The notes: generated by a model from the letters alone, not told the origin. A stretch of DNA of 64,000 nucleotides from Pavona decussata (GCA_977016875.1 CDRNST010000035.1:372001-436000); one strand, 5' to 3'. Positions 19,630-62,200 are shown, numbered from the stretch's first letter. Numbers and translations: made by a program.

Positions 19630-21907
19630 GTCACAACAAAGAGATCCGGAAGGTCTGACATACGATCAAGATTGGACGGTCCATGTCAAAGAACTTATAG
19701 AAAGGAGGGAAGATGGTCTGTGCATGGATACTATATCAGGGTCCACCAAACTACGTCGTAAGTCCATGATTCCAGGTGACCCTGAGGCGGTCCTGCAATC
19801 TGTTACCCCATTAAGAACGCCAGCAATGAGCCCAAAGAACAACCCCGAAGACAAGCAGGACGGAGAACAGGCCATAGCAAACGGCACTTCATGTGTTAAC
19901 GAGGAGCCTGGATCTAAAAGTAGCAGTCCTGAAGTTTTCAAAAGGACTGAATACACCTGGGAGAAGTTACTGCGTCATCCTAGTAATACAAAGATAAGAC
20001 GAAGTCAGACCTTTCACTACAACCTCTCAGAGCACAGGCCATCCCTTCGTTCACTCAATTTTGACAGAGAAGTCGAAGGACAACGTGACATGACTAGGAG
20101 TAAATCTCTCAGGGGATACAGACATCATGGATCGCCATCAAGCCAAGTATTTTCTGCCGATGCACCGTCGCCAATTACCGGAATTACTGTCTCTGGAAAA
20201 AGTGTAGACAGAGTGAAGGAAAGAAAAAGCCTTGAAAAATGTCCGGCAGATAGTCACTCAGACACCAATGTTGCAGAAGCCACGGCTAACAAACGGCGGA
20301 TCCGCAGATCAGGGTCTGCACCCTGTAAGAAAGCCAAAGAAACTGTTGTCAGACGCGAAGCCGAAGACCCTCCAAGAAAAAGAAGTGAATCTCTTCGGTG
20401 GATTCCAGAGCCAGATTACCAGTCGGTGTCGATTGAGGAGCTTGTCAAAAATAGGGAGCAAACCAACGAAAGAGCTAGCGTTGAGAAACGTTTAGAACAT
20501 CAACAACCTGCCACCAACGGAGAATACGAAAAGGCTATTACCGCTAAAAAATCCAACTCTAAGGAGACAAACAAACAGGTCAGCAGATCCGGGTCTGCAC
20601 CTTCCGCCCAAGCCAAAGAAAGTGTCGTGCGACGTGAAGCAGACGAGCCTTTGAGACAAAGAAGTGTATCCCTTCGTTGGATTCCAGAACCAGATTACCA
20701 GTCAGTGTCAGTAGAGGAACTTGCTACAGCAGCTCAAACCCGCGGCAAGGATAGCATTGGAAATCATGTGTGCCTGGTGGAGATTCATAGTCCACCAAAG
20801 GGTAGTAAGTCAAACGTTAGTACGTTTGTCGGTACTGGTGAGATTGGCAATAGTCTTCAAGAGGTATCCATATCGCCAGGCTCTTCAGGTAAAACGTCAA
20901 AGGCACCACATAAAGGCCAACAGGAAAACGCCTCAGGTGATTCGGTCAGCAAACTCCCCTTACCGGGTGTGGCACAACGTATACCGACAGAAAGTATTGT
21001 TGAAAGTGACAAGACCACAGAAATGAGTAGTGGAACAGGAATCGAGACAAAAGACACCAAAGAGGACACTGTTTCAGTCAAAAATCGCATCCAAAACTTG
21101 GAGAGCCAGACTGCCCCAGGGAAAACAAATTCTGGCTCCCGCCAAGGCAGTCCAACAGAAACTAATTTGGTAGACAGCGCAGCCAATTTAGCAACATCCA
21201 TGGGTAACAGTAACGATAAACCAAAATCGCTGAATTCGAACGAAAAGCCATCAGCCAATATCGAAGTTGCGAAGGAAGAACCCAAAATCGACAATAGCCC
21301 GGCTGTTCTGCCATCGTCGATGAGCAAAAAACCCGCAGTCAGATCGATTGGTAAAATGAAAATAGTGAAAAGTGACGATACCCCTGCTTGGTTGGTGAAT
21401 CAAGAACGAACTCTTAAGCACCCAATAAGAGATCAACTATCGCAGGGTTTGCTAAGAACGTCATCCGCAAAGACGAACCAATTTACAGATCAGTCATCGA
21501 CATCAAATGTGGTCGTTCTTGACAACAAAACTGCGGCGCCACGACAAAGCACAAGCGACCTAGTAAGGGCCGCATTAAAGAACAAAAACAAAAGCAACAC
21601 CACTGATGACAACAATAACCTCATCAACGTAGAAGCCCAAGGTGACGACGCCAAAGAACCAATTTCACCACGAAATGAGTCCGTGAAAGACCAAGATACA
21701 TGCAATACAGTAACAAAAGATGCAGATACCGGTCTCAGTTTAGAAGAAAAGAAGAAAAAATGGAAACGCGAGCAGATTGTCGATCAACTTCAAAGCGCTC
21801 GACAAAGGAACTCGAACCAGAACTACGTATTTGGCACTGGTCTAGCGTATCAGTCTTGTATGCCAGAACTCCAAAAAAAACTAAAGCAACTGACTCTTTC
21901 CAAGTGA
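19630..21907 (+). CDS. Gene B, second coding exon: long disordered cytoplasmic tail (full protein 792 aa), uncharacterised type III membrane protein
   Basis: 758 stop-free codons after acceptor ttgcAG at 19628-19629. S/K/E/T-rich with an internal ~52-aa repeat. AATAAA at 22592-22597. Confidence 0.9.
20287..20722 (+). repeat. Two copies of a ~52-aa coding module in gene B
   Basis: RSGSAP..AKE.VVRREA..P.R.RS.SLRWIPEPDYQSVS.EEL at ~20287-20443 and ~20569-20722. Confidence 0.9.
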
Positions 21908-23538: not shown

Positions 23539-26500
23539 TCACCGCCATTGTGAAAAAGAAACACCGCTGGGACTTCTGTAAAGAGACAAATGACAAATTT
23601 AAACGACAGAAAAGTATTTCAACACACATAAAAAAGCGGAAAAAGTACTGAATTACATGAAAACTGTGGCGACCACTCGCTGCCGTAAAAATCGCCCTTT
23701 AACGTTTATCGTTCGAATGAAGTGGGATTCTTTGAAACTTACTGTGAGCCTCCACCAAACGAGCCAAAGGAAGGAGATTGCTGCTGCTGCTGCGGCTGAA
23801 TACTCCCAAACCCTTGAGTCGGGGACTGACCAGCTAGGGCTCCAAACGAAGGAACATTAGCCTGAGATGCCAAGGAACCAAACGTTGGACTACCTGAAGA
23901 TCTGTGGAGGTAGACGACAACTTCACACGCTATTTTTTTAGGACTGAACAGTCGTGGTAAGACAGGCATTTTTAAGGTAGCCCTGGCTCTTTAGGCTAGT
24001 AACATACAAATCTTGTGAAGAAATGTGGTGTTATATTTTAAGCCTGGTTGTGGTCTTCGCACACTGGCAAGCGATTTATTGTCTACCGTTTGAAAGCCAC
24101 TGGTGTGTGGAGGAGGCAGCCCTTTCTGACCGTTAATTTCAAGTCTTCTGCAAGTTCCCTGTGATTTTGCAATACAAATTTTCTGCCAAAACTGTTATTT
24201 ACTGTATATCAATTCGCTAATCAAACGGTACTCTAACCGTAAACAGTAATTGCACTTAGAAGGGAATGACCAGACTTTTGGGGGGATAAAGCCCACACCT
24301 ACTGCATCATCAAATGACAAAGGATATAATGATTGTAACCAATAATTATAGATTTAGTACCACTATTGTTGTAAGTTATTTCTGAAAAACCGCTTTAGGG
24401 ATTGAGCTAAAAGGTTATATTGGATTGTATTGCACAAACGGAAATGTTGCGCTCTGAGGCTATTTACATCTCTTGAAGTTAAATCCTGATATTTTGGTAT
24501 CATAAAAATATGAAAAATAACCGTCTTTTTCAACTAAGAATTGAGGGTCCGACACGTATTTAATGAGTGACAGAACTGTACTGCTATAGTAAAAAAGGTT
24601 AAGATTAACTTCTTTTCATGAGTTAATAATTCAGGAAGAGAAAACAAAGGAAAACACTACAATGGTTCGATCTTAATTATCATAAAATTCGGTGAACTTT
24701 TGCTTTCAATTGCCCCAAAAATTCATAATGGTTTTAGAAACTATATCAACGCTCGAAACAGTGCTTCAACCGATTTCTAAACAACTCGAAGGTGGTTTAA
24801 AAAAACTCGGTTGTACCTGTTTTTTTTTTTTTTCAACTCATTTTTCGGTGTTTGGAAATCGGATGAAAGACTCTTTCGCGTGTTTGATATATTACTTTCT
24901 AATGGTGTATTTAAAGATTTAAAGACGTTTGTGAAAGAAACTTACTGTCCAAATCCTCCCGCACTTCCTGCACCAAAGATCCTAAAAAAATTAAAAGCAC
25001 CTACAATTTATAAACAAAGAAGCGGATTTGCTAAAAATGAAAGAAAAAACATACATTATGGGAAGTTTTCAAGGAAATTGCTGTTGAAACTATCATAAAC
25101 TTTTACTGCCTTGATATTGCAACGTTTATAAAATGCCCACAAAATGGGCGCTTATTGGTAGGGCCAGATGAACAACATAGGACTCCAAGTTATTACAAAC
25201 AAATATTCACTGAAGAATCTACATTTTCACTATCAGGATCGGCAGTTTCCAGACAAACACTTCGAAAATGATAACAAAAGCTCCTGACACTCGCTGGACG
25301 CCTTTGCTCTGTAATGAGGTTGCCACTATTGCATGGAGCAACAGCGTGCACCTGATTGTACAACGTACCCCCCAGATGGAGTGGCGCCCGGGCCACCTTG
25401 AGGAGAGCTGCCAAATGCTGGGGCGCCTCCAAATGAAGGACTTGAACCAAATGACGGTGCACCACCAAACGCTGAAGCTCCGGCTGAGGGTGAACCAAAA
25501 GGCTGCGATGAACCGAACCCTGAACTGCCGCCTGAAAATCACAAGGTAAGCTTTATCAACAATTAATGGAGAGCAAACTCAGAATGTCCTAAATTGTGTT
25601 CATTGCAGTGGCGTTTCTTCGATGAAATGAAACAAAATGAAAAAAAAATGGTTGACATTAACATTCCAAGTCGTCCGAGACGGGAATGGGTTGGCCTACA
25701 TGTATGACTTCATTTACAACTTATTGACCTGTTCTAAGTGATTATAATCCTGATTGGCACGCGAGCATTAAAACCAAATTGTAAATAACTTCTAGTCAAC
25801 TACACTACTTACCAGGAGATGATGCAGTACCGAAGCCAAAACCAGAAGACAACACACTTCCGCCTTGTGTACTGAATGATCCTCCAGTGAACCCGCCTGA
25901 AGACTGGGACCCAAATCCTGATTGAGAAAACGGGCCACTGCCAAGAGAACTCTGGAAAACAAACAAGAACAGCATATTGATGATTGTGAAACAGCCCTTA
26001 AACCAACAATAGTGGAACAGTATAACAACCATGGTTAAATTCTAAAATGCATGAAAGAGGCTTAAAATTGACGTTACTAAAAAGCACTTTTTTTAGGTGG
26101 CTACCGCCATTCACATTTTTATTTTTTCCTATGAGTACTTTGGTACTCTCGAGATGTAAACGGTGCAATGTACAAACCTTGAATATATCATCTCCAGACT
26201 TCCCACCAAACAATGACGGCTCTAACATGGGGAAACAAAAAAAGAAATAAACAATGTCACTTACTGGCACAGCAATTCCAGAATGCATTGACTACCATGC
26301 TGAGTGGGTTTTGGACAAATAGTTTGAAAGACGAATTGGTGGGCAGGGTTAAAACTAGAAAACTAGAGAACAAACTAGGTAAGAGAGTCAACTATTTTTA
26401 AGATGCTTCCTAAGTTGCTGCCACGCTGTCACTCCCTGCAGAAAATCATGATACAAAAGTTTAAGTACATAAAGGCAAAACAAGAACTAACGTGTGGTTG

Positions 26501-28983
26501 CTGGCGCTGAAAATCCTTGAGGGGCTCCAAACGGGTTGGTCTTGTTGGTCTGCGAGGTACCTTGCCCTCCTAAACCAAAACCCCCAAAGCCAAAACCAAG
26601 AGCTGCAAGAACAGTCACGAGACAGTTAGTTAATACGAGAGAAGAACATATAATATATCAAAGCTTCAGTGCCTGAGCTTCTAGAATGAGAACAACAAGA
26701 TAATTTGTTTTATTTCTTGTCTCCAAACGGTTTGGTAATCTTCAAAGCATAGAAAGGATAAAAATAGTAATGAAAATAAATGATAAATTGCAACCTTGCC
26801 AGACCTAAACCTAAGTGCTCAAAGTGGTGATAATTTTCAATTTTATTCGGGAATAGATTCCTACCCAGCGGCTAAGAAATCTTCCCAGCAATAAATTGCA
26901 CCCTCTGAAACCAGAGCGATTTATCCATGAGATAGCCACCCCAATCTTCTGGGGTGAACATTTATCCCAGCTTTCTCATTCAAACTATACTATCTAACAT
27001 GAATCTATGGCGACATCTGTTAATGACATTGATGCTTCACAATTACCAGGTAATGGTGTCTTAACACCAAGTTATGGCAAAAGGAGTATGGCTGTTGGTT
27101 GCATGTGCCACACATGACATTCCAATCCAAGCAGTATGCAGGATGTTTGTCCCATGAACCTAGTTTATTGGCCTTAGCTCCCCACGAGTCTCCTGTAGCA
27201 TAGTGCTAGAGCATCCGAACTTGTATTAGGACGTTCTTAGGTTCGACTCCTGATAGGAGCACTCGGAGTTTTTTTTTCCGAGTATGCCTGTGTCACTTAC
27301 TGAATAATACATCATTCTCTTTTATTCACCAGGCCATCACATTTATTCCATTGCGTATATGCCACACGACACTCCAATGCTAGCACTATGCAGGATGTTT
27401 GTCCCATGAACCTAGTTTAATGGCCTTAACTCCCACGAGCTAGTAATTGGAAGGTCTTAGGTTCGACTCCTGATAGAAGCACTCGGATTTTTTTCAGAGT
27501 ATGCCTGTGTTACTTACTGAATAATACATCATTCTCAAATTTGGTGAGGCGTTCAGATTCTGGCAGCATTTACTCTCAACTCACACAGTTTGGCTGCTTT
27601 ATACATTTAAGTGAAAAACCCCACTTACCATTGTCAGCTGACTTAGACGCTGCTTGGCCAAACCCACTGCTGGTGGTTGGTGCAAATGACGACTGACCAA
27701 AAGTTGCCTTTCCTCCAAACGCTGGCGCAGCTGTTGTGTTTGCTGATCCAAATACTGGTGCAGAGCCAAAGGTACTGCCTTGACTACTTACAGCAGAAGC
27801 GAATGGCTGAGGGCTTCCAAAGCTCATCCCACTAGTTGATGTCCCAAACACAGATGATGTTGGGGCAAAGGCAGTAGATGCTGGTGCTCCAAACAGATTG
27901 CCTCCAGCTGATGTGCTTGCAGCTGTTCTGAGAGACCCAAATCCGGTACTTGCTGCACTTGAGACTGCTCCAAAGGCACTGCTTGTGTTAGTTGGATTAC
28001 TGAAGATCCCACTAAGAGCTGAGGTCGATGAAGTCTCAGGTGTACTTGTCACTGCAGTGATTGTTGGAGCTGTTGAAACGGTATTAAATGGAGAACTTCC
28101 TACTGGTATTGATGCTGTTGTGGAAGTTGGATTAGATACTGGATTGGATTGGATACTGGAAAAGAATGGACTGGTTGTGCTTGTAACAGTAAAGGCAGAT
28201 GACGGTGATCCAGCTGAAAAACCAAGCAAATTACTTGGTGCTGTAGTGGTAGAAGGTGCAGTAACACCAGCGTTAGAACCACTTGGTGGCAGGCCAAATA
28301 AACCAGCAGATGTAGAAGCAGCTGTAGTAGCAGCAGAACCAAAAACATTCCCAGTCTGGGGTGATGTGCTAATTGTATTTGCAGGAGGTGCTACAACAGA
28401 CTTGCTACTTTCAGATAGTGCCTGTGCAAACACGCCTCCCGCATTTGCTGGAATACCAACGCTGAGTTGTGTAGTCGCATTTGCAGCACTTGTGTCTCTG
28501 TTTTCTGATGGAGTTCGCGTAGACAATGAAGTACATGTAGATGGGGTAGTTGCAGATACTGCATTAGTTGAAAGTGCTGTTGGAACACCTCCAAAGAAAC
28601 TGCCTGTGACACCTGGACCAGACGATTTCACCAATGCACCCAAGATACTTGTAGAAGTGCTGGCTGGATCACCACTGCCAAATGTACTGCCTATGGTACT
28701 AGCTGAGCCAAGATTTTTACAGAACCCAGGGGATGGAGCAGAAAATGCAAATGATGTTGCTGTCGTTGCTGGTGTTGAAATTCCACTGGAACTGGCAATG
28801 GATGGACTTGCAGTTGTCACTGGGTGACTGGGCTGTCAAATAGAAGGATACTGTGTTTAAACTTTAAGAAATCAAGAAACATCTAATAGTTTATACTGTT
28901 TGCCCATTATGTCAGGTGGAACCATGTTTGGATGCGTGTGCAATGGAATATCTCAGAGCATGCAGTGAACAAAGGCAAAAAGG

Positions 28984-29019
<36 letters not shown>

Positions 29020-32000
29020 CCAGCCACAAAAATCTACAACAAACCAAAAACCTTAATGATTAAACATGCGTATCAATAACATAACCAACTGGTGGATAAA
29101 ATTAAAAGTTAGTCAAAATGAAACGAAAAAAAAAAAAAAAAAAAAATACCGAGTAAAAACAAAACGTCAAAAGTCTCAAAGTAATCGCTGGATGCTTCTA
29201 CAACCACGCCTGCCATTACAATTGACTATGACTAAGTAGACACTGCTTACTTCTAAGACTTCACTGACCTCTTTACTCTTGTCTTGGCCTATTGGTGCTG
29301 CTGGTGAACTGTCATCACCAGATGCAAATAAATTCCTACTGACCCTTTGGCTTGGTGTAATCCCTGCTGCACTGGAGGTAGTGGCAGAACTCACTACAGG
29401 AATCTGACTTGCTGCTTTAACATCGCTGCCTTTACTACTGAGGCTTAATTGACTAGGTGCTGAGAAAGTTTTCCCAGAAGAAGATCCGAGATTGAACAAA
29501 CCGCTTGCTGGGGGAGCAAAGCTTAGTGGTGCAGACGAGGTGGGGAACTGACCCAAGGGAGAACCAGCTTGAGTTCCTGACAAAGACAACCGCAACCCAC
29601 CAGCACTACCAGCAGTAGAAGAGCTTGGCCCCGCTGGACCAAATGCAGGCTTGAAGACTGGCATGGGGTTCACAGTGACATTAGGTGCAACAGTACCACC
29701 ACTTTCATATGCCTGTGGTGAAGAGATTGGTGGTTTGAAGGTCACCACAGGAGGACCAGGCTTGCCACTGTCAGTGGATTTGAAGATGAACTCCGTGCTA
29801 CACTGTGGCTTTGCTGAAGGTTTTTGGGCTTCTACTGTTGCTGCCATCAACGCAGCATTGGCAATTGCCTTTGCAGCTGAGTTTTCTGTATCGTGGTCCT
29901 TAGCTTGGGCACCACCTTGTGTTTGTGGCTTATACGCTACCAGTGTTACTGGCTCAATGCTTGCTGAAGGATCAAGGTTGCTGTTGCTTGATGGCTGAAC
30001 AGCACTCTGAACTGCACTGGCCCTGTTCATGGCAGCCATTCCAGCAGCAACATTAGGTGGAATTACTGAACTAATTAATTTGACACCTGGAGAAAATGCA
30101 CTAGTTGATGGCTGTTGAGAAAAACAAAACAAAATATTACTACAGAACTTTCATTGCTGATAGCAGTAAACTGATTCTGTTTTGGACAATTTGCCTGACC
30201 TTAACCGACCACTTTCATGACAATTCTCTAAAACTAAATAATGTCAAAGGTTCTTCCATATAGAGCATGATTCTTAACAGTCTCTTTCCACGTAAAGGGA
30301 GGCTCTGAACTGCCTGGTAATAATCCCCCAAACGCACAGTGCATTGTAACCTATACAGTATTCTGTAAATGTCAAATTTATGTTGTATATACATGTAGCA
30401 AATAATAAATAAATAATAATCAATTTATATAGCGCTTTTTATATGATATTCAAAAGCGCTTACAATGTAACAACGAACAATTTAGTCAAAATCAATAAAA
30501 TATAAAATTTAAGAATAAGCAATCAAACAAAAAAGTAAGAAATAAAATAAACAAAGTAGGGAATAATCAGATGTCATATGCATTTTTAAACAAAAATGTC
30601 TTCAAGTGTTTCTAGAAACATGGTTTTGTATGTGTTCTACTTCCATCAAGAGATTTGACCATGTTCATGGATATTGAAATCAACCCTGGACCTACCAGTA
30701 TAACTGGATCTCCAAGCATCTCAAGCATCTCAGTAAGGAATATTAACCTTCTCTCTACAAGTGTTTTGGCCTCGTGTTTACATACTCGTGTTTCTTACTC
30801 GAGGAGCAAACTCATTAATCTACGACCTGCCTACAAACAATGTTTTTGTAAACCTATATTGCACCACAATTCATTAAAATGCGTGTTACTTGATGGCAGA
30901 GAACTGAAATCATTTGAATATTCTGAATGGTCTGTGAAACTACAGTGTAAAACTTTGAGGGTGATAATTGTATATCGTCCCCCTTACTCGCCACAGTATC
31001 AAGTCTCTTCCTCCGTGTTTTCTTAAGAGTTTTCCACCCTTCTTGAGAATACAGTTTTGTGTTTGGAACCTCTGCTTATTGTGGGTGACTTTAACTTCCA
31101 CCTTGATGACCATCAGAATGCTGATACAAGAACATTCTGACAAATTTTGACGACTTTTGGTCTACAGCAGCATGTTTCTGTTCTTACTCATGCCATACAC
31201 TTGATCTCTTGATTAGTAGATCGGTTGCCGATTTTAGTCTTGGCGTTCCAATGGCCACATGTCTTATTTCGGATCACTATTCAGTTATTACCCACATTGG
31301 TTTTCCAAAACCTGCTTTAACATCTAAGCACCTGTCCTATCGGAAGCTAAAAGATATAAACATCACTGATTTTCAATCTGATCTAATTTCATCATTGAAA
31401 CTGCCACTTGCTTCGGATGACCTGAATAAACTAGTATATGAATTTTGTAGCGCTCTCATAACTGCACTTGACCTTCATCCCCTATGACATCCAAGGAAAT
31501 TGTTGCTCGACCAAAAGTTCCCTGGTTTACTAATGAACTAAGAAATCTCAAAAGGAGACGCAGAAGATTGGAAAGATCAATGAGAAAATTTGGCCTTGAA
31601 TCCGACAAACAAGCTTTTCGTCTAATCTGTCAGGAGTATTCTTCTCTTCTCAAGGTCTCTCGGTCTGCATATTATTCTGGCCGTGTTTCTGATTGCGCTG
31701 GTGATACGCGAAAATTGTTTCAAATCCTCAAATCACTGTGTAAAAAAAGCTGTGGAAACACCCCTCCTGAGTTTACTAATCCTTTCTGTTTGGTAAGTTT
31801 GGTAAATTTTTTTATCAAGGAAATTGATTTAATTTTGGAGAATATTGATGGTCTCAATGTGGAGCCTCCTCTTTTAAAGTGTCACTGCGGTGATGTGAAA
31901 TTAAGTCAATTTTCTGAAAACAAGTAAAGTGGAACGTTTAAATCAGTGACATTAGCAATGGAACAAAAAAAATTATCCAGTTAAGTATTGCTTCTCATCC

Positions 32001-35000: not shown

Positions 35001-38000
35001 TTGACCTGGTCATTTAACTCAAGTGTACATGTCTGAATTGTATTATTGGTCGAATTCAAGCCAAGACTATTTAAAAACCAGTATTTGCAGGTAGCACAAA
35101 TAATTTTAGGTAAAATTGACAAAATTAGCAATGAAGTTGAAGTTAAAGTTAAAAAAGAATAATAATTCTACAATATGTTACATGTACATGTACATGTATA
35201 AAACTTTATTACCTTTTACGTTCATTTTCTTTATTCCACTCTTCATCAAGAACCATGTTCACCTCTCTGAGTAGTACATAAAAAAGTGTCACTCAGTCAG
35301 TAAGCTCTCATGAACACAACCCTATTAACTCCAAGAAAGTCTTGATAGTTGTATGTATGAACTCCATTTTTAAATATGTAAGAGGAGCAGGGATGACACA
35401 GTAGTGAGAGCCCTTGTTTCTGACCAAAATTAATTGTCTGGGTTGATTCCAGGAACTGTCATACATGTAAAAATATCGTCCCAGAGGCAGAGTGATCCAG
35501 TTTATATTATTTATTTTAGTGTTCTTTTCCCATCATTATAATCCCTATAATTCCTTGCATTCAAGTGATTCTAACCTTTTGTCTATTTCCATGACTAAAA
35601 CAGTAACCTAGCTATGGTGAAAAATCATTTTGTGTAATTCCACTGAAGTTAGGGAATGACCTACTGCATACTACAAAGCAGCAAAGAACCTCTTTTGAAA
35701 GTGTTTTAAAAGTTTTATTTTCTTGTAAACTCAAGTTTGGTTTTGGTCATGAGACATTGGTGTATGTATCATGCATTTTGAAGAACTGAGTCATTAGCAT
35801 CATCACTATTAAAGTTATGATAAAATGAGTTTGCAGTTGGTTCCCTTCCTTGTTACCAGGTTTTTCTCCAGGTACTCAGGTCAAAAACCCACATTTCTAA
35901 ATTTCCATTTGATCTGGGTAATAATAGTGTCTTCCCAATCAGCCGTGTGAGTTAGAAACCACTTGAGCTTTAAGTAATCTATTTATTATGATGTTAACTG
36001 ATACCTTAGAGTTTTGTCAAGATAAAGGTGCAGGTTTCTGACATCTCTCATTTTCTTTGCATTCATTGGGTCCAAAGCTCGAGACTGTGGAAAAGAAACC
36101 AAAGAGCTGTTTTAGAAAGAGATCTCTAGGTTGCCATACAAGAATATCAAATAAATACACTGTGTAGCATTATTTTAAGAGAGGAAGCAACGCTATCAAG
36201 AAGAAAGAAAGATATCATATTCAGCAAGTCACAGACGAGCATGATGAATGCTACATCTTTGTAACTTCATAGCCAAACTTGTATATTAATTTCCATTGTT
36301 GGAGTTTCTTTGGTATCTCATATGACACTGCTGATCGACCGTTAAATCTTTATTATTATTATTACTATAATTATTATTATTATTATTTAATCCTGCACAT
36401 TCAAAAGATACATCTTGCAAAATGTTAGTCAAACTCCACAGATCTCCGATCGCTGTCTAGAATTTTTGCTTGAAGCCATATCAGAAGTTTGGTTTCTTTT
36501 GCAAGGCTAAAAAAGTCTTGGGGTTGTAGAAAAAAAATATTGGTGGTCTTGCCATCTTGCAAGGTCTCAAATTTGCTATTCACCATGCCAAGCTTGCCAT
36601 GGGTTTCCTTGGAACTCAGTGGTCAAAGCATCCCACCGTTGGGATGAAGGTCACACTAAGGACTACATGTAACTCCTGAAAGAGACTTTACCTTTCTTTG
36701 TCCCACGCTCATAAAATACTGAATAAAATACATGTACTGTCTGTACTGTACATTATTTCAACTGTGCATACCTTTAGCAATTGAACATATCTAGGGTCAT
36801 TCTTCCTCTCCTGCCTGATTCTAAATGTGGTAAAAGACACAACAATGCAATGCTGTTATAATGCATTAATAATTTTCTGCTTTTAACATGCTTGGTAACA
36901 AACACCAATAAACTTGGATGTAGCAGGCAGACAAAGAGGTGGGTAATAACTATCAGGCTAATGCATTTAAAATGTGTTTCGAACGCGTCTGAGTTGACAT
37001 TTCAAATGTGGAACGATATGATTACAAATTTCTCCTTGTAATCATAAGTTTTTTGTAAATTCAAATAAATTAAAATCAGCTCCACAAAAAGAGATTTAAA
37101 ATCACAATCATCTTACCCCCCCCCCCCCCTTACCCTTCCTCCCCTGATGAAAAGAACTTTTTCTAAGAGCCCCCTCTATAGAAATTCCAATTTTACTCTT
37201 CCAAACTTTCCCTTAATAAACGTTTTGGCCTTTGAACCCCCCTACAGTGGCGCCCCTCCTGGAATTTTCAATCTCTTCAGTGGGGAGGGGGGAGGGGGAA
37301 AGGTGGGGTATTGATATTTTTCAGGGACTACTCATACATGTACACTGTGATATCATTAATTACCTTGCATCTTCCAAAACATCAAAAGCTTCAAGCACTT
37401 TTCGTTTCTCCTCATTGATATCTTTTTGCTGATCCTGTTACAAGTTTAAATGTGAACACAAAAAGTTGTCTTTATTTCCAGAAATATTAACCATTTACAG
37501 TATCACAGACATTTTTAACTATCAATAAATGCCACTTGCACCTGTTCAGACTTCAGTTATTAATAACAAACTCAAAATGAAACATGGTCACGAATGTTTG
37601 TTTCCTACAGTGTACAGTAAGTTACTATTTTGATTATTTCTTCATACCTTGGTTGCATCTCTGATGGCTGTAAGTGACCGACTAATCTCATCAGTTGACT
37701 TTCTTAAGGAGTTGAGATCCTTGTTATCATCTGTCAAACAACAATTCCTTTGCATCTGCTTCACACTTTTACGTAATGTGGCCATCTCTTCACTAAATTG
37801 ACTGATCTGTTCCAAAAATAAAATAGTAAAAATAATGTGAATGTGAAAGAAATAAGAAATCCAAAAATCAATCAAGCGGATGACATTGATCTTTCTTTTA
37901 AGCACTTTTAAAATAGCATCTGGTGTTCACATTCGGCTGAATATGAACTTCTGGAAAGAAAAACACAATCAAGTTTTGTTATTTCCTTTCTCAAGGACAA

Positions 38001-41000
38001 GGAGTGTCTGTTCAACAGCAGTGTAACCAGTGGGTGAGGTTACATTTATGTGTATTTTGTACTTGCAAATTGGTGGTGGAAAGACAGAAGTGCTCATCAA
38101 TTTGACCTCAATCCAGATTTCACCAAATTAACTAATTTCTAATTTGGCATACCAGCTGGCCAGCTAGCTATGACATACATACATGTACATGTACTGTAGA
38201 TGAACATTTAGATCATTAATTTTGGTCTTATGGCCTGAACTTGAATAATTAGCTTACAACCTTTGGGAAAAATTCAAGAAACAAAAAGATCTGATGAACA
38301 TAAAATAAAAAGAAATCAGAAAATTGTAATAAAATGCAACAAAATATTTAGCATAAACAAGGAACTACATTTGTACATGTAACATGATAACCAGCTGGAA
38401 AAATGTGCTTAATTGGCACCCAAGCACTTTGTCCACACAGCCCCTTAAGGATGGTGCCCACTTTTGCTACTCTGCATAATTATGTTTAGCGCATCTCTGA
38501 TTGGTCCAAGAGGCTCTGATGTCTTAAGGAAGGTGCCTACTTATTCAAAGGTATTTTTTGCGTGGTTTATAAATATGCGGGAAAAGAAGATCTTAGAAAG
38601 TGTTATTGAAATCCGAAAAGAAAATTGGAGGTAACCACGCATTTTCAGAGATAATTAAGTTAAAAATTGGAGAAAAGTTCCATATGTTGTTGTGTATGTT
38701 AGCGCTTTTTACAAATATTGTTGATTACAAATGGTCACTTCTAAGAACAATGCTAGGCCGCGCAAAACGCTTAATTTATAAATCGTCTACACAAGACTTC
38801 CTTTTGCAAAAATGCAAGACCTTAAAAGGGATATTTTTGAAATTGAAATATCCCGAAAAACATCAACTCCGCTATCAATTGCCTCCAGCATCCTATAGAC
38901 CCAGTTCAAACACCTTCTGACCGACCTGTTTGGATTACGTTGCCATTTAAAGATCAGAAATCGGCGGACGTGGTTCGCAGGCAACTTGGCGACCTCGGAA
39001 CTAAAATTAATCAAGAACTACAGCCGGTGTTCATGAGCAAAAAGATTGCTGATCATCTGAGTCACAGAAGAAAAGCCTCCCCTGATCAATCAGCAAAGTG
39101 TAGTATACGAATTCACATGTGATTTGTGTGATACAAATTATATTGGGTACACTTGCAAGCCGCCACCTCCATCAACGCGTTGAGGAGCATAAACGTTCTG
39201 TGATCTGAAAACATCTCAGGGAAGAACTTTCAAGTCATAAAGAAATGCCGTGACAAATTTGAATGTTTGGTCTACGAAATGCTGTGGATCAAGAACAAAA
39301 GACCGAAACTGAACACGCAAGCGGATTCCATTCGCGCGAAACTCTTTACCTAAATGCTTTCATGCTAATTTATTTTCTCACTTACAATACCTATAAATAT
39401 GCCTTTCCGTTATTTTCATTTTACTCATTTGACAATGACGATATGAAGTCGTCGAAACGTCATGCTGTTTTACTATCGTTAATTTTCTTGTTGAAATGTT
39501 TCTTTAAATCGTTTTTTATCAAAAAAAAATTGTGTGGTTTTTTTCTTTTTGGATTTCAACGACACTTGCTAAGATCTTTTTTCCTGCATATTCATAAACC
39601 GTGTAAAAATAAGTAGGCATTGGAATTAGTAGGCACCAAGAGTATACCCATTCTGTGGAATTTCTGGTCCATTTTGTGTTTTGCATGTGGTCTGCAATTT
39701 AATTAGCCAGCAAACTTTGCTGTGTGGATCTTTTTTGCTGGTCTATGCTTAGTTTTTGAGAAAATTGAGGCCAAAAATATTGAGTCAGGATATAAGATGG
39801 TTATGCTCTCAGCCCTGTTGCCCCATCAATAGAAAAATATTAAATTTAAAAAAAATATTTCTTAACAAGTCATTTACCGCTTCTTGTATATGCTGAGATA
39901 AAGAGGCTTCAATAACATTGCTTTTGGAAACAGGGGCAGGCTAGCAAAGGAAAAAGAGAAAAATGATCAATTGAGCAACATTTACAGTACTTAGGAAATC
40001 TCTTTTACAATACATAATTTACAGTATATTAATTAAATGATTGACTACAGTATTATACTGAAGATACAGTATTGTAACTTCCAAGCCGTGAGTGAACTGG
40101 CTGGGAAAGCCCTTTTGAAAACATGCTGTGGCATACATGTGTCTTTATGATATCACTTTCTAAAACTGAACGTAGTTCTTAAAAAAATATATACAGTATT
40201 TATGTCTCCTGCAATTTACTATTATTTCTTCTCCAAAACAGTAGATTGTTTCTGGACGTATGTACTGTATTACTTTACAGATTGTTGCAAGACTACTACT
40301 GGAAGTCAAGTGAGCACTGTGTTTCTGGCCAAGCTACCATGGCCGAAAAGCACATTTTGAACAAGATGATCCTAACCATTTCTTTTTTGGAGATTTGCTG
40401 CTTTGTTTCTGGCCGGCCATCCTCCTCAAAGCTCCATTTTTCCCGGGAAGTTGCAGCCTGTTCAAACATAATCAACGATTTGCAGATCAGCAACAACATA
40501 ATATTTGCAACTTTAAATCAATGACTGTAAAACTGCAAAAAGAGAGAAGGTCAACAAATTTGAAAATAATGGAGAACATCATTCCCTCAAGCTCAAAATC
40601 ATGTTAAGAAAATGAGGGTACAATGTACCCATCATGATACATACGTATCAAAGAGAATAGTACTAAGCCAATGTTTCTAGTACATGTATTAATTTATTAG
40701 TGAGTTGAACAATGCCCATGGCAGGTACATACACGCAATTATGGGTTCTGTTACACTATGTTTACCAATAAAACTGGATTTTTCCAACTCCTAAATCATG
40801 TAAATACATGTACATGTGCTAAAACATTTACATCTAAAATTCAGAGTGCATGTGTTACAAGTAAATATAGATCTAAAGTATACATATTTATGAAGTCATA
40901 TGTTAAATTTATGTTAGCAGCTAGTTGGGGGTATATATAAATGAAACAAATATTAAACACGTATTTGACAGTCAGAATGGAAGGAGGTTGGAAAGTTTGC

Positions 41001-44000
41001 AATTTATAATTTGTTGATCAGGAATAAAAACCAACCTACCTCTCCTCCATATTTTCCCACCACAGCACCTTCAGGCCCTTCAGAAAGAACCAAGCTGCTC
41101 CTAATTAAACATAACATGATAGTTAGCAACAGCTGAAGGATGCTAAAGAAACAATCAAACAATTTATCAAAGGCAACCTAATACTTTTAATTAAATTAAT
41201 TGAAAAAAAAAAAAGCATCTAAGTTTAAAGCAAAGGAAGAAAGTAACAGATCACTAGAAAAGTCTTTTTGTCTTTTACTGATGTACCGATCAGTAACTTT
41301 CTCTAATTTTGGAGTTTCAAGTTTTACGTGAAAACTACATGTACAGTACATGTACCTTTTACAGCATAATATTCATTTATTATTTATTTACTATTAAACA
41401 ACACCAAAAGCAAACACTGCTCAACAGCAACTCTTTTATTTTAGTGTTTATACTTTGCATTTTATCCAAGGTACATGTACTAAATTTTATATACATGTAA
41501 ATAGTAAATCTAAAGTTTATTTCACAACAAGAGTTTTCAAGTTTCTTGATTAAACAGACATTAGTTAAAACAATGGCAACAAAGAAAACACAATTGCATA
41601 AACTCTATCCTAAAAAGTGCTTCTGCAGTACGTTATAACTCACCTTGCACTGACACTTCTTGGGTAAAATGCTGGCTCTCGACCATCACTCATTGCATAA
41701 TAAATGTCATCAAAGTTAGTTTCATCTTCCTGCAAGATAAAAATACAGCCACAAAGTGTTGATACATGAGACTGACTTTGTTTCAATATATATAGCACAT
41801 GTATAAGCTGGCAGAAAAAAAGCTGGCTAGCTAGCTATTACATACATACACGTACATGTACTGTAGATGTACATTTAGGTCATTTGGTCTTATGGCCTGA
41901 ACTTGAATACTTAGCTTACAACTTTTGTGAAAAATTCAAGAAACAAAAAGATCTGAATAGATGTAAAATAAAAAGAAATCAGAAAATTGTAATAAAATGC
42001 AACAAAATATTGAGCATAAACAAGGAACTACATTCGTACATGTAACATGATAACCAGCTGGAAAAATGTGCTTAATTGGCACCCAAGCACTTTGTCCACA
42101 CAGCCCTTAAAGGATGCTGCTATTGTCCACACAGCCCTTTGCTACTCTGCATATGTTCAGCGCATCTCCGGTTGGTCCGAGAGGCTCTGATGTCTTAAGG
42201 AAGGTGCCTACTTATTCAAAGGTATTTTTTGCATGGTTTATAAATATGCGGGAAAAGAAAAACTTAGAAAGTGTTATTGAAATCTGAAAAGAAAATTAGA
42301 GGTAACCACGCATTTTCAGAGATAATTAAGTTAAAAATTGGAGAAAAATTCCATATGTTGTTGTGTATGTTAGCGCTTTATACAAATATTGTTGATTAAT
42401 TTAGTAAACCTTGCATTGGCACCTGAGATGGAGTGGATGAGATTTCTTTGGGTTGCTTTCTTCCAAGAGTGACAACCTACAAAATAAATGGACTAATTGA
42501 TTAAATGCAAAGAAAAGGTGACTTTGAAATAAGCAGGTACAAGTGTAACATGCACATGTAAAACGCCAGAAAATACATGCATGTAAGAGTCAAAAAAAGT
42601 TATGGCTGCCTTTTGTGTGTACAAGCATTTGTCTCATGTTGTTAAACTCCAGTTTGTTTGTTTCTTTGTTTTCAGGAAAATCCTTCTAATTGCAGGCATC
42701 CAGTCATAGATGTGGCATATTTGATAGGAACACTGAGAACTCACCACAGTAGGACTCAAGAATAAGGAGGAGAAGGGTAAAATTACTATAATAACTTCTC
42801 CTTGAAAAATGTTGGCAGTCAGTATCAGTTAAAGTCACACACTCAATCATACAACACATACCTGAGGTTTAGCATTAGCAGGAGATTGAAGTAAAGACAC
42901 CACTGGACTCCCACCCATCCTTGAGTGGGTTTGATTAGTGGGTGTGGGTTTTACAAGCTGTGGTGTTGCTGAGTGCTTGACAGATTCAGTGGCTGGTACT
43001 AGGGTCTGAGAAGATGGTTTATATGCTGCAAATCCACCCTGTTGGCCTGGTAATGAAAAAGCACTTGCAGGGGTACCTCCAGGGAATACACCAGCAGAAG
43101 ACCGAGGATCAGTTTGCTTGGGGCTGACAAAAGGGAAGGCACTTGATGGTGTGTTCCCTGGTGTCCCTGATGAAGCAACACAAGAAACCAAAGAAACATT
43201 TTGCTTCGGGCTGGCAAAGGAGAATGCACTTGGTGCACTGGCTGCAGATGTTGCTGATGGTTGTTTAGAGCTGCCAACAGAAAATGCCCCTACTTGGACG
43301 TGTCCTGGTATCCCTGGTAAGGCTGGGCCAGAGGCAGAAGGAGTGGTTTTATTGGCACTTCCCAAGGAGAAGGCACCAACTGGAAGGTTTCCAGAAGTCC
43401 CCAATGAAACAGGCCCAAGCTGTAATGGGCCTTTCTCTGTAGGTCCAGGACCTGGTAATTAAAAAGTACAAGTTAACAAGGACCACAAAAAAACAATTGG
43501 CCGGTGGCAATTTAATACCGCCACTGCGCTACAGCTGAACATGAGTAAGAAGATTTCTGTTCTATAATAAAATTAATTTCAGCAAGCATTACAGCATTCT
43601 GTTTTTAAAATTCACCATCAGGAACTTTACTGTAGTCAGTAAGCACATTTCAGTTGTAAACCCCTTATACAGTACATGGATGTACATGTATAAACCTAAC
43701 CACATATTTTCCTGGTTTATGATGTTTCTACCTGATTGTATAGTAACAGCCACATTATGAGCAAAATGATAAAAAAAAATTAATGCCTTATACATGAACA
43801 TGTACAGTGTAAGTAGTGAAATACTGTTTTCACTTTTCACTTTGATTGGTCCATGTTCAAATGAACAAAAAAGGCAGTACTGAGATCCTCTACATACTGT
43901 AACAACTAATTGACAGTCAAGTTACTTTATAATAATTATAAAGTGTAATTATTACACATGTCCAAATGACAGTTTTGATTGAAATACACAATGCCCCTGA

Positions 44001-47000
44001 ATAACAAGCCATTCTGCTTACCACCTGTTCCTTGAGGCACACTGCCCACCATTTTTGACAAAATAGTTTTCCTTTGTCCTGCAGGTGGTAGAGGTTCATG
44101 GCATTTCACTATGTAATGATTTGTGTTTGGAGTTTGGTTTACCATGTGAAATGGACATAAGACACCATCTGTAGATAGAATCAACATTATTGGCGCAGGT
44201 GGAAGCCGTTCCTCTCCCTTAACAAATTCCCTGGTTGAGCTAAAGTCAATAGCCAATCCCATGGGAAATGACTCGTCATTGTTACTGGTCAAAGGCATTG
44301 TAGGCCGGCCATCCTCCTCAAAGCTCCATTTTTCCCAGGAAGTTGCAGCCTGTTCAAACACAATCAATGATTTGCAGATCAGCAACAAATAATATTTGCA
44401 ACTTTAAATCAATGAATGTAAAACTGCAAAAAGAGAGGTCAACAAATTTGAAAATAATGGAGAACATTATTCCCTCAAACTCACAATCATGTTAAGAAAA
44501 TGAGGGTACAATGTACTCATCATGATGTACGTATCAAAGAGAATAGTACTAAGCCAATGTTTCTAGTACATGTATTAATTTATTAGTGAGTTGAACAATG
44601 CCCATGGCAGGTACATACACGCAATTATGGGTTCTGCTACACTATGTTTACCAATAAAACTGGATTTTTCCAACTCCTAAATCATGCAAATACATGTACA
44701 TGTGCTAAAACATTTACATGTAACATTCAGAGTGCATGTTACATGTAAATATAGATCTAAAATATACATATTTATGAAGTGACCTGTTAATTTATGTTAG
44801 CAGCTAGTTAAGGGTATATATAAATGAAACAAATATTAAACATGTATTTGACAGTCAGAATGGAAGGAGGCTGGAAAGTTTGCAATTTACAAAATGTTGA
44901 TCAGGAATAAAAACCAACCTACCTGATCTCCTCCATATTTTCCCACCACAGCAGCTTCAAGTCCATTGGAACAAGCTGACACAACCAAGCTCCTAATTAA
45001 ACATAACATGATAGTAAGCAACAGCTGAAGGATGCTAAAGAAACAACCAAACAATTTATCAAAGGCAACCTAACACTTTTAATGAAATTAATTGAAAAAA
45101 AAAGCATCTATTTGTAAGTTTAACGCAAAGGAATTTAAGAAAGTGACAGATCATTAGAAAAGTCTTTTTGTCTTTTAGTGATGTACCGATCAGTAACTTT
45201 CTCTAAGGTACATGATTGTACCTTTTACAGCATAATATTCATTTATTATTTATTTACTATTAAACAACACCAAAAGCAAACACTGCTCAACAGCAACTGT
45301 TTTATTTTAGTGTTTATTCTTTGCATTTTATCCAAGGTACATGTACTAAATTTTATATACATGTAAATAGTAAATCTAAAGTTTATTTCACAACAAGAGT
45401 TTTCAAGTTTCTTGATTAAACAGTCATTAGTTAAAACAATGGCAACAAAGAAAACTTAATTGCATAAACTCTATCCTAAAAAGTGCTTCTGCAGTACGTT
45501 ATAGTTTAAGACATAACTCACCATGCACTGATACTTCTTGGGTAAAATGCTGGCTCTCGACCATCACTCATTGCATAATAAATGTCATCAAAGTTAGTTA
45601 TAGTTACTGAATTTTCCTACAAGATAAAAATACAGCCACAAAGTGTTGATACATGAGACTGACTTTGTTTCAATATATATAGCACATAAGCTGGCACAAA
45701 ACAATGATTCTAAAACAAGTAAAAATAGAGCTGTCACCAGGATAAGACATATTGGATTGAAAAACGTTCTCTCGTTAAAAAGATTATCAGTCTATAGGCT
45801 TTAATGAATGAAAAATGTAGTGCATAAACGGAAATATATACAAAAAGGGTGCTAAAATTTGAGAATAAAAAGAAGTGTGAAAAAAGCTAACAGACATGTA
45901 CACATGTTCACTTGAAGTCTGTACTCCCCTGAACTACACGTACATACATGTAATGCATAATGATCAGATACTGAAAAACATTGTATAGTTTACAGTTCAA
46001 AATAGTATGTAAGTTGCATCACCCTCTGATTACAATGTATGAGCAACAGTAAAAGTAGTGTTTCAAATGATGTAGATACACTGCAGGATGGTAGTGGACT
46101 TACTGAAGTGGAGATAAGTAGAAATTTGGGGCAGTCTCCCTCTTCAAAACTGGAGTAAATGGCTGCAAACAACGTTGTTGAAATCCACAACACATCCGTC
46201 ACTAGATAATATTAAAATGCAAAAGAAAGTGTGAAATTTATACAAGGTTAAGAATGTTTGTCACGGAGCACAAAGTTTTACTATATACAGTATACCAGAT
46301 TAAAAATACATGTTTATTTATTTAGTTAGTTATTTTTATATACTGTATTTGTACTAATTTGTAATATTTTATTTTTGTAATAATTATTGCAATAGTTTAG
46401 TTTTCCTGGGTTCCTTTTGATAACAGAGTCAGTTTTGACTCTGACTGGATCACCCTGGTATAAATATAAATATACTGAGTGTGTATGTATTAATACATGT
46501 ACACTGTATGTCACAGAGTATGTGGAAGTCAAGTATTGAGGCAGCTGACTCAAAGTTCAGAGAGAAAGAAACTTGCATCCAGCATTGCATACAATACTGG
46601 TCACATGTGCAACACCATGCAACTCCCACCCCTCCCCCTCCCCCGCCTCAACACACACAGACACCCCTCCCCATCCCCCGGCCACAATTGTAGTGAAAAG
46701 TGTTGCAGCATAATGTACAATTCTGTAGAATGTATGTGACCCTGCTGATCATACATTATTTAATTACGGTATTTTACTACCTAGGTGTGGATCATCAGTG
46801 AACAATTCGGGGCATTTTATTTCCTTCTTTACTTGGAGAACCTAGAAAAAAAAAGTGCACTATTATTATACCTGGCAGGATACAGAACTATCTCTTTCTT
46901 GAGATCTAAACAAAACCCCTTTTCAAAAGGATTAGCAAAGTATTGATCTAAGAATATTAAGACCATGTTCTATTTTGAAAGAGTGTACATATAGTAACTA

Positions 47001-59289: not shown

Positions 59290-62200
59290 TATGGAAGGCG
59301 GAATGGTGCAAAATTCAAGGAATCAAAATCGCTTCCAACATCAACAACCAATCTGCAGTTCAACATTTTCTTTCTAGATCAACAATAAAATCCGTCCAAC
59401 TTCAACGGCAAATACAATAACCAACAACGAAAGTAAGTCAACACCAACAACAATTCCTCTCGTCTTCAACAACGAATCACCTTCAAAACCAACATCGAAC
59501 AGAGTCTCAACTTCAACAACACAAAATTCGTTCAACAATTTGGGGACGAGCGACTGGCTATGGTCGGGGGAGGTTGGGACCGAAAAAATCCATCGCTGGG
59601 AAATAGAAGATGGCGGCCGGCAGGGCTCGGATGGGACTTGTGTTTTATAGATTTGGAACAGCTAGTCTTAGATTATGAGCAATTGAAAGCGTCAAACTTT
59701 ACTAGAAACTATTCCTTAGACGAAACTCTTCTGGAAAGGTTTGAAAATGCTGTCCAAGCTTTACGAAACGTGCTTCCTCATGTCCATCATTCACATTCAG
59801 TTGCTGCTATATTACATGTAACACAGTTTATTTGGTTGGCTATATCCCTGCTCAACAGTATGGATTCCCTTGGCTACTACCAGTACTATTGTCAACTTCA
59901 GTCATTTTCCTGCTTCACAAGTATTTTTGTGTTCCCCATTCATTGCATGTAATACAGCAGTTGACATGTTCTGTGTACTTAACTCGTAATGTAGCTTTGA
60001 ACATTTAGTAATCTGCTGGCATTTCCTCATTTTAAAAAAAATGCTCTTGAGGATGTATTCTGCGTAATGCCTGTTGAACTTTTGCTAATCATTCTTTACG
60101 CTTTAAATAGAATGACTGCAGTATATGCAAGAATCCCCAAGTAAAGTTCTTTTCAGCATTCACATTTGGACCTTCCCCCGAAAGGGGTACACCAGGTTTG
60201 AAACCTCAGGAGGTGTGATACATTGGGGGATTTGGAATCTGCCATGTTTTTTAAGGGTGTGGGGTAGGAAATTTTTGCTGTGAATTCTCTGGAGTAGTTT
60301 TATTTTACAAGGAAATTTGTTTTTTTATTGAAAACAATGGAGAATTGGCAGTAAACGAGTGCTTCAATACGTAAAGAAATAGATATTTGACAGGGGCATT
60401 GTGTAAGAAAAGAGGCATTTATTAAAATAACTATAGTTTTCTGATTTATTTGCATCGCACTGTTTGCAATCACCGATGACTCAATGACCACTCAAACATA
60501 TAGGCTACACAAAAGTCCGGGGGAAAGTTCTACAGTAAAAATACCCCTGCCGCTTTCCACTTGAATTCTCTTTTGCACAAGGAACATTTAATATCTTTCA
60601 CTTGGGTCATCTTTGTTTCCCCCTTAATCTATCATTGACTTTTTGCAGATCCAATTTTGATTGTGATATTTTTTTCATCTAAATCTTTTGGTGACTAGAT
60701 TTTTCAGGTTTTCCTTCAAGCCTGGGGGAGTTTGGGGGATTATAATTTATTTACCACAAATTTGCACCTCCCAATCATTTTGGAGTGCAACCATGGGGAC
60801 CTTCCCCTGTAATTCAATAGTTGAAATTAAAATCAGAACAACATTTATTTTACAAGACAAAGGTTGAAATTTTAAACTAAGAAACAGAATAAGATACATT
60901 CGAAGATACATTTGCTAAATTGACATTATGGAAATTGTAAGTTCTTGGAGGATACACAATAGGTTTAAGGAATGTAAAATGTGGGATTTTACTTAATTCC
61001 TACTCCACTTTACAACATATAAGCTTCTGGTGAGACAAGATTCAGGATGTTAAAATCCAACTTTAGATATTCAGGAATTCTTAGCTATTTTAGAATTCAG
61101 GGGTCCAAGAAAAACTTAAGTGGGAATCAGAGTTTGTGGGCATATTGCGGAACCTCTTGTACAATTTTCATGTTGATTTGAACACAACTGTTTAGTATAA
61201 AACAAACAATGTGATTTTAGTTAAAGCGTATTTGTAAACACAACAGAACACTCAGGAAAGCATTAGAAACTAGAGTGCAGACATTTGACACATGAAATAC
61301 TCTTAAATATTTACAGCCAACAAAAGCACAGAATAGAAATAGTGCTATTTTGATTTAGTAGAGTTTCATGGTTCTGATACCTGCACTCCAATCCAGAGAG
61401 TTAAGTAAAATAATATTTTCATATTCAAGCATTACATGTATGCATTTGTTCAAATTCTGTTAGCATGCCTACAATGCTTTGGAAACCCAAAGCAATCTGT
61501 TTACAGTTGGTCTGTAGTCCATGAACAGCTGTAACAAGTAGGTAATAAACATGTGAGAAATTTACCAACATGCACTGTTCAATTAGTAGCTTCCTTTCTA
61601 TGGTCCATTATTCTCTGAATCCAAGCACAATGAAGGCAGTATGGGCGAGGAGGGGCAAATGAGAGGGGGGCTGTTGTACACAGATTGCCAAGATACAACC
61701 CCAGTGACCAACATCTCTGAGAGAAGGGGAGGAGGTCCTGTACTAGTACTGTACTGTATATTGCCAAAAAGACATTAAAACCCGCAGATAACAACCTAGA
61801 TATCAGAACCTTTTTAGGCTAAAATTGTTGATTTTGATCCCTCATTTCGCTGTAAAAACCAATACTATAAGAACCTTTCTAGGCTAAAATTCTAGATTCT
61901 TGTTGGCAGGTTTTTACTGTAGTGGTCAACCACAGGATAAGCTTTGTTTGGTCATGTACCTAAGACTAAATATAAACCCTGCCAATTGAGAACGGACCTA
62001 ATTACAGAAATTCATTATTCCGACCAAATAGTGTAAAAGTCCTTCACAAAATTTGATTATTCAGATGAACAAATCTCCAGGATGTCATGCAAAATTTTGA
62101 TAAATAATATTGCTGAAAGTTTACATACAGTGAAAGGTCCCTTTTGCTTGGAAGGGCCCATATTGGAATTTCTGACCCCCAAATGTTCAGCCTTTCTCTG

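Follow-up and report, generated by a model that had tools for sequence, protein, structure and literature searches.

The origin of new spliceosomal introns and exons is an old question, and its recent well-documented cases are few, consisting mostly of simple tandem duplications that make one intron. Rearrangements by templated insertion or template switching include fork stalling and template switching or microhomology-mediated break-induced replication (FoSTeS/MMBIR) and the templated insertion chains of cancer and germline structural variants; most known examples are pathogenic or somatic. Inserted sequence may also be exonised and exon sequence intronised (PMC9612004), for instance when transposon insertions in exons are spliced out through cryptic sites. 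The birth of an intron from a duplicated gene segment is described for the RdRp gene of potato (Ma, Lan & Niu 2016, PMC4974935), and vertebrate ATP2A1 likewise gained an intron when genomic sequence was duplicated (Hellsten et al. 2011, PMC3265369). The present locus lies in a 64,000-nt stretch of the genome of Pavona decussata (GCA_977016875.1, CDRNST010000035.1:372001-436000), called the window throughout, with positions counted from its first letter. In the genome's only Nup214 gene, which encodes a conserved nuclear-pore component and is found on the minus strand of the window, one exon has become four and three introns have been added, probably by one rearrangement. Two of the three introns are copied; the third combines former exon sequence with foldback repeat and copied intron. 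About 64 residues derived from the beta-propeller of the protein replace about 45 residues of a linker.

The chimeric insert and its host gene

The insert occupies positions 40412-42402 and is a chimera of 1,991 nt inside a Nup214 exon, in the sense orientation of the gene. In the direction of the gene, it consists of a copy of 38154-38727 followed by a copy of 44303-45704. In the self-BLAST comparison, 40411-41821 matches 44303-45704 with 89.6% identity, gaps included (1455 columns, 55 mismatches, 17 gap openings, E = 0), and 41821-42398 matches 38154-38727 with 91.3% identity. The search of the whole 602-Mb assembly located the unique parts of the insert only at these three places. The sources are 1.7 kb and 1.9 kb away from the copy, in permuted order and direct orientation, and the copy is placed inside a different exon. 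Both sources are intact and transcribed, which indicates that the segments were copied and not moved. The permuted chimera is real and far beyond chance.

An initial annotation of the window, produced from the sequence alone, had described 40411-42401 as a chimera of 44303-45702 and 38154-38727. Both copies were found as described, with the bounds of the insert now set to 40412-42402 and source A extended to 45704. The AAAT at 42399-42402 belongs to the repeat and not to the exon, so that the unique half does not begin at 42402, and the source exon a1, which had been placed one base off, is 45616-45522. The features of the region are the following (a slash marks a splice joint or an exon boundary):

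44303-45704, minus strand: source A, containing a1, a2 and the start of a3 with their introns (RNA joints 45522/44992 and 44923/44349)
38154-38727, minus strand: source B, in the intron that follows the 39940 exon; its part 38444-38727 is the loop, right arm and tail of the foldback repeat
45616-45522, minus strand: exon a1, propeller exon of 95 nt
44992-44923, minus strand: exon a2, propeller exon of 70 nt
44349-44022, minus strand: exon a3, propeller exon, with the end of PF16755
43451-42862, minus strand: linker exon, placed by RNA joints and splice sites
42476-42423, minus strand: X1, the first 54 nt of the ancestral linker exon, now a separate exon ending at the CAG/GT donor
42403-42422, minus strand: former coding stretch, with the V-P-M-Q-G-L codons and the CT of the Leu codon that follows; it now opens the new intron
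41822-42402, minus strand: B', the copy of source B and most of new intron 1, with the repeat part 42135-42402 and 313 nt of unique intron
40411-41821, minus strand: A', the copy of source A, with 88 nt of upstream intron, a1, intron, a2, intron and the first 47 nt of a3
41644-41729, minus strand: e1', new exon of 86 nt, phase 0, copy of a1
41040-41100, minus strand: e2', new exon of 61 nt, copy of a2 with the 5' half heavily rewritten
40377-40457, minus strand: e3'+X2, new exon of 81 nt, with 47 nt from a3 and the last 34 nt of the ancestral exon, in frame and with its own donor
39940-39878, minus strand: next constitutive exon, 63 nt, placed by an RNA joint, with an orthologous exon in the distant corals L011 and L012

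The host gene matches vertebrate Nup214 exon by exon and collinearly in tblastn, from 58080 to about 23600. Its propeller exons span 58080-44022, and six of them match residues 16-427 of the vertebrate protein in collinear order. Exons rich in phenylalanine-glycine (FG) are located further down; the FG region of the vertebrate protein is matched by large exons rich in S/T/G/F (29176-30132, 27576-28820 and about 25350-25950). From the central coiled-coil part of vertebrate Nup214, which binds Nup88/Nup62, there is one short match (33307-33236). Exon a3 alone matches positions 311-366 of the 366 of PF16755, the NUP159/214 beta-propeller (E 8.3e-5, 22.5 bits); a single exon is expected to score below the whole-protein cut-off of 29.6 bits, and the orthologous open reading frame (ORF) of the distant coral L012 carries PF16755. 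Both the N-terminal beta-propeller and the C-terminal FG-repeat region of Nup214 are present. PF16755 gave no match when searched against the whole genome in six frames, the exons being too short, so the identity of the gene is settled by tblastn and the single-exon hmmscan. The representative proteins recovered with exon a3 were full-length Nup214 of vertebrates and short fragments of ORFs, and no others. Exon a3 exists in one copy in the genome, where Nup214 is a single-copy gene.

The exon boundaries of the region were fixed by RNA joints and canonical splice sites. They place the ends of both source segments in introns, and both source end points lie in introns of phase 0. Exon 39940-39878 is likely the first exon after the linker. 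The exon following it starts near 37806, and the loose end of an RNA contig maps to 37777-37806.

Ancestral exon, splicing and later changes

To find the loci of the relatives, the 90% cluster containing the a3 ORF was used. A coral with about 6% divergence, represented by an ENA assembly (L016) and four Logan contigs (L018-L021), has the structure without the insert. The alignment of its sequences to the window breaks off at 42403 and resumes at 40411; the space between holds 113 other bases, as opposed to 1,991. The same insert-less structure is seen independently in a contig of run X15. In all five loci of this coral, the site is a single uninterrupted open exon of 222 nt, that is, 74 codons, preceded by ...tag and followed by gttagg (L016:11793-12014). 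Its first 25 codons correspond to 42476-42402 and its last 12 to 40412-40377. In the distant corals L011 (213 nt), L012 (237 nt) and L014, too, the site is occupied by one exon. In L016, L011 and L012, this exon starts with sequence that aligns to X1 and ends with sequence that aligns to X2.

The two unique halves are thus the halves of one ancestral exon, of which 74 nt from the start and 35 nt from the end remain on the two sides of the insert in P. decussata. The initial annotation had predicted one uninterrupted exon in orthologues, in these frames, and had named separate ancestral exons as the observation that would speak against it; the coral at about 6% and the three distant corals all have the single exon. 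What the annotation did not include is the loss of the middle of the exon, 112-113 nt or about 38 codons of a P/T/K-rich linker, which is gone in P. decussata. The lost 113 nt were not found elsewhere in the genome as a reciprocal product, a blank search which proves little.

The window's own assembly (L013) was left out of the independent evidence for the insert. Another individual, from a different ENA assembly (L015), has 98.0% identity over 14,968 nt, and substitutions amount to about 0.5% in the introns of the region. It contains both copies and both sources, with the new exons open. Short-read contigs of X4 cross 41821 (rec8) and 42398 (rec11), and one reaches 30 nt across 40410. Contigs of X5, which is labelled as another species and is about 2% diverged, cross 40410/40411 (rec16) and 42398-42402 (rec18). 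An assembly artefact, the doubt raised initially, is ruled out by the junctions in L015, X4 and X5. A reading of the state of e1' in the species with about 2% divergence from the X5 joints was dropped, since those contigs may be the source copy. All samples examined from the two carrying species have the insert, which appears to be fixed. Substitution divergence is 4.4% between the introns of A and A' and 5.7% between B and B'; judged from these sequences, the insertion would fit after the split from the coral at about 6%, which is without the insert, and before the split from the species at about 2%, which carries it.

In the case of splicing, run X7, labelled as P. decussata, is taken as RNA because its contigs, rec22, rec23, rec24 and rec26 among them, have GT..AG joints at all conserved introns of the region. 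Contig rec26 (993 nt) contains a3, the linker exon and X1 followed by 37 nt of 41729-41693, with the joints 42862/42476 and 42423/41729. As the contig runs from X1 into 41729-41693, donor 42423 is joined to the copied acceptor 41729. It stops where e1' turns identical to a1, which is the expected break of a k-mer assembly. The former coding stretch 42403-42422, homologous to in-exon sequence of L016:11793-12014, is spliced out in an X7 contig, and contig rec22 joins 40440-40377 to 39940-39878. Splicing in vivo therefore includes an intron that arose from a segment duplicated within the gene (42423/41729 and 40377/39940), in agreement with the rescue through a cryptic donor and a borrowed acceptor that had been proposed. 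Contig rec23 (145 nt) includes 41099-41039 with 42 nt on each side which are not adjacent in the genome, a layout identical to that of the contig for the true a2. We infer that these flanks are e1' and e3', which would give the joints e1'/e2' and e2'/e3'. Transcripts that always skip the three exons, another stated ground for rejection, are contradicted by X7 contigs which include the new exons, the 61-nt middle one among them.

The five-exon string 42476-42423/41729-41644/41100-41040/40457-40377/39940-39878 comprises 345 nt without a stop, and the model from a1 through the 39940 exon is open over 476 codons. The splice sites named by the annotation are all present, its stop-free splicing of the three copied exons holds (no stop in 76 codons), and the direct joint 42423/39940, which skips them, is in frame as it had noted. 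An in-frame length polymorphism is found at 40396-40398, where an X7 RNA contig is without 3 nt corresponding to one Gln codon of the old exon tail.

The new exons could belong to a minor or non-productive isoform, with a working mRNA that skips them (42423/39940) and copied exons that decay neutrally. The in-frame skipped form is in favor of this explanation, together with the fact that contigs are silent on isoform proportions and that splice joints are known only among those listed. However, the contig with a3, the linker exon and X1 continues unbroken into e1', the joints listed at the new exons are all inclusion joints, and the contig depths of 9-48 are in the range of constitutive exons. 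Furthermore, 76 codons are stop-free, every net indel has a length divisible by 3, all six splice sites are still in place at 4-6% divergence, and the frame is also kept in the second individual (L015). Neutral decay of skipped exons is thus considered unlikely, and inclusion in the working mRNA is preferred.

The changes since insertion were polarised with L016 and the distant corals. According to these outgroups, a1 was ancestrally 98 nt and a2 67 nt. On the copy branch, e1' lost 12 nt, and in e2' about 35 nt at the start were rewritten in a complex way, with a net change of -6 nt. On the source branch in P. decussata, a1 lost 3 nt (98 to 95; 45606-45616) and a2 gained 3 nt (67 to 70; 44923-44927), an insertion which is not in the X5 and X15 contigs. 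The frame-preserving length changes of the initial annotation (95 to 86 and 70 to 61) are right as present-day figures, but with ancestral lengths of 98 and 67 part of the change took place in the source. Its two replacements of Trp by Arg are found as TG/G to AG/G at the split codon and TGG to CGG in the third piece.

Since the insertion, the copied exons have experienced only net in-frame indels and mostly non-synonymous substitutions. Copy-branch substitutions affect 18 of 194 exonic and 15 of 1140 intronic sites (Fisher 6e-8), an excess located mostly in the e2' patch of about 35 nt, where the substitutions are not independent events and may stem from two or three indels of a complex kind and not from a large number of substitutions. 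All three exonic indels are multiples of 3, as opposed to 4 of 14 in the copied non-coding DNA, and this test of frame keeping is marginal (hypergeometric about 0.05). Mean hydropathy fell from -0.39 to -0.85, so that the copied exons are now more hydrophilic. The above suggest that the frame is under selection; adaptive change is not proven. Similarly, the drift of propeller sequence toward disordered linker, as initially proposed, agrees with the fall in hydropathy and with the concentration of copy-branch change in the copied exons, and is not proven either.

Tentatively, the whole may be described as an "intron transposition" at the DNA level by a single non-tandem templated insertion, in which two introns with exon stubs were carried into a different exon of this single-copy, conserved gene, a third chimeric intron was made and the propeller strands were then reshaped into hydrophilic linker by selection and not by drift. 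The part concerning selection is based on the change of both Trp to Arg, the deletion of hydrophobic stretches and the frame kept by every indel.

Derived substitutions in the copied introns are 31 on the source branch and 15 on the copy branch (binomial p = 0.03; 40411-41821 compared with 44303-45704), which may be an alignment effect or the result of gene conversion. The a1-a2 intron of L016 has about 1.7 kb of extra sequence (L016:6322-8052) which is not in the window.

Junctions and origin of the insert

The junctions were read using the pre-insertion sequence of L016. At the first junction, the exon formerly read ...GGTTTACT followed by GGCACAG and now reads ...GGTTTACT followed by AAATTAATC, with an overlap of 0-1 nt. 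The new bases are the start of the loop (about 75 nt) of a foldback repeat. At the second, source B ends with ...GCCAGC(T) and the ancestral source A starts with (CC)TTTTTTTTCTGCC, with an overlap of 1-2 nt (CT). At the third, source A ends with ...GGCCGGCC and the exon resumes with (C)AGAAAC, with an overlap of 1 nt (C). Microhomology across the junctions is thus 0-2 nt, which is compatible with end joining as well. Target-site duplication and poly(A) are both absent at the insert.

The fusion of the two pieces had been attributed to a shared 7-mer, AGCTGGC, but the joint adjoins the 7-mer and has a microhomology of 1-2 nt. A microhomology-primed fusion at the 7-mer GCCAGCT was rejected: the outgroup shows that the 9 nt between the 7-mers are source-A sequence, and the joint consequently precedes them. 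GCCAGCT closes source B, recurs in source A at a depth of 9 nt and is thus carried twice by the product (41812-41840, 45680-45704, 38154-38170). Its repetition may be due to chance or be the trace of a first pairing step.

The first 265 nt or so of the insert (42135-42402) are part of a dispersed foldback repeat with thousands of candidate copies genome-wide. This repeat is about 410 nt long, with inverted arms of about 130 nt and a loop of about 75 nt, and is found in the window at 42135-42402, 38444-38727, 39541-39637 and 14343-14470. A first look gave 2409 candidates in the genome, and its contig depth exceeds 10,000 in all three large runs. In the foldback repeat of source B, the only contiguous parts are loop, right arm and tail; 813 nt separate them from part of the left arm. 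Inside it, at 38728-39540, lies another dispersed repeat of 813 nt with at least 40 near-full-length copies of about 90% identity, which is not present at the orthologous site in L016. The edge of this 813-nt repeat is within 4 nt of the start of the B' copy. The arm/loop boundary of the hairpin thus coincides with two independent breakpoints, and this position may be prone to breaks.

With a high-copy foldback repeat at one end of the insert, capture of gene fragments by a mobile element, such as a Pack-MULE, a Helitron or a foldback-type transposon, was considered. Yet only half of the repeat is present, starting at the loop, the other end of the insert is without a matching terminus, the unique parts are nowhere else in the 602-Mb assembly and there is no target-site duplication. 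Since termini at both ends and further genomic copies of the unique parts are lacking, transposon capture was rejected and is hardly credible. An RNA-mediated origin, by reverse transcriptase acting on unspliced Nup214 pre-mRNA with a template switch, of the type driven by long interspersed nuclear elements (LINEs), would agree with the sense orientation of the insert and with its start at a defined point of the repeat. On the contrary, complete introns are retained, the repeat was entered at an internal loop and not at a terminus, and 113 nt of the target were deleted where a duplication would be expected. None of the three marks of a LINE-type retrocopy (poly(A) tail, target-site duplication, intron loss) is present, which makes this origin very improbable.

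The reading preferred here, and in our judgment quite probable, is a one-step copy-insertion at a break in the exon, rescued by an existing CAG/GT and borrowed splice sites. The ancestral state is the single 222-nt exon (74 codons), part of the disordered linker after the Nup214 beta-propeller. A break in this exon would have been repaired with a patchwork copied from the same gene; about 113 nt of the exon were lost in the event. The first piece is 578 nt from the intron 1.7-2.2 kb downstream, starting at the loop of the foldback repeat, and the second 1.4 kb from 1.9-3.3 kb upstream, containing two propeller exons, introns and the first 47 nt of a third exon. The route may have been template switching linked to replication or repair, or end-joining capture of a fragment from a circle or a tandem-duplication junction of the 7.5-kb interval; a single event is most likely, and the two routes are indistinguishable here.

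The survival of the gene is explained by four circumstances together. The exon already contained the CAG/GT now used as a phase-0 donor, where the outgroups read Q-V, and the copied a1 acceptor is of phase 0 as well. At the time of copying, a1 and a2 added 98 + 67 = 165 nt, that is, 55 codons, according to the outgroups. The 47 copied nt of a3 were joined in the original frame to the 34 nt left of the old exon, and the donor of the old exon, which is located 6 nt further on than in the distant corals, was kept.

A multi-step history would begin with a tandem duplication of the 7.5 kb of 38154-45704, followed by two deletions of most of the redundant sequence, each ending inside a copy of the linker exon. 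The joint of B to A has exactly the appearance of a tandem-duplication junction, six whole exons (1368 nt) would be duplicated in frame with every intermediate in frame, and the missing 113 nt would need no special explanation. It involves, however, three events and not one, and both deletions must end in the same 222-nt exon in different copies, for which the chance is about (222/7500)^2 if random. In addition, the species at about 2% has both outer junctions and the coral at about 6% has none, with no intermediate seen. This history is therefore rather unlikely, and the one-step copy-insertion is retained.

Certain points count against the one-step insertion followed by remodelling. A one-step origin is unprovable from present-day sequence and no intermediate taxon is among those sampled. 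Besides the e2' patch and the marginal frame test, the evidence for splicing consists of Logan contigs of one RNA run, which give presence and not proportions, the joints e1'/e2' and e2'/e3' are deduced from rec23, and the skipping isoform 42423/39940, also in frame, may coexist with the inclusion form.

The states before and after the event are both found in living relatives, that is, the coral at about 6% without the insert and the species at about 2% with it. With both available, it can be tested which splice signals were sufficient from the first day, how a fragment of a folded domain is tolerated and remodelled in a disordered linker, and how complex repair events of the type seen in disease become a fixed protein innovation.

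Other elements were observed in the window and in one relative. Just beyond the 3' end of Nup214 and on the opposite strand, 19598-21907 (plus strand) is an S/K/E-rich ORF of 769 aa that contains an internal repeat (about 100 aa). Upstream of the first matched Nup214 exon, two inverted copies of an ORF of about 130 aa (59560-59952, plus strand; 62221-63796, minus strand) flank integrase-like ORFs and with them probably form a large mobile element. In the distant coral L012, the intron region downstream of the orthologous exon (L012:13694-18653) contains a 1261-aa ORF of a protein-primed DNA polymerase B which adjoins an integrase-like ORF (Pfam PF03175; PF00665 weak), and resembles a Maverick/Polinton element.

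Comparison with known systems

As in potato RdRp and ATP2A1, a duplicated piece of the same gene makes a working intron in one step. In accordance with the potato case, the donor of new intron 1 comes from a former exon, and its acceptor, polypyrimidine tract and presumably branch site from the parental intron. Those two cases are simple tandem duplications with one intron each. On the contrary, the Nup214 copy is non-tandem and permuted, it is located inside a different exon where it replaces 113 nt, and no head-to-tail duplicate lies beside its source. The Nup214 insert also differs in that it brings two complete introns and adds three exons.

Similarly to templated insertions, two nearby segments, from 4 kb to either side, were copied, chained and put at a break with their sources left intact, with a small deletion of the target and no target-site duplication. 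The microhomology of only 0-2 nt is low compared with classical MMBIR. In contrast to the template-switch events known as variants, the Nup214 insert is apparently fixed and is expressed as protein-coding exons.

With cases of exonisation and intronisation, the locus shares a disrupted exon rescued through a pre-existing GT, by which 20 nt of former coding sequence are now intron. The inserted material differs, as it is not a transposon but exons of the gene's own folded domain with their introns and splice sites, and for this reason splicing was largely ready-made. Finally, as in exon duplication and shuffling in metazoan genes, coding exons bounded by introns of the same phase are reused elsewhere in the same protein. 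Unlike exon shuffling, however, what was placed in the disordered linker is not a duplicated domain but fragments of beta-propeller blades, which are unable to fold alone.

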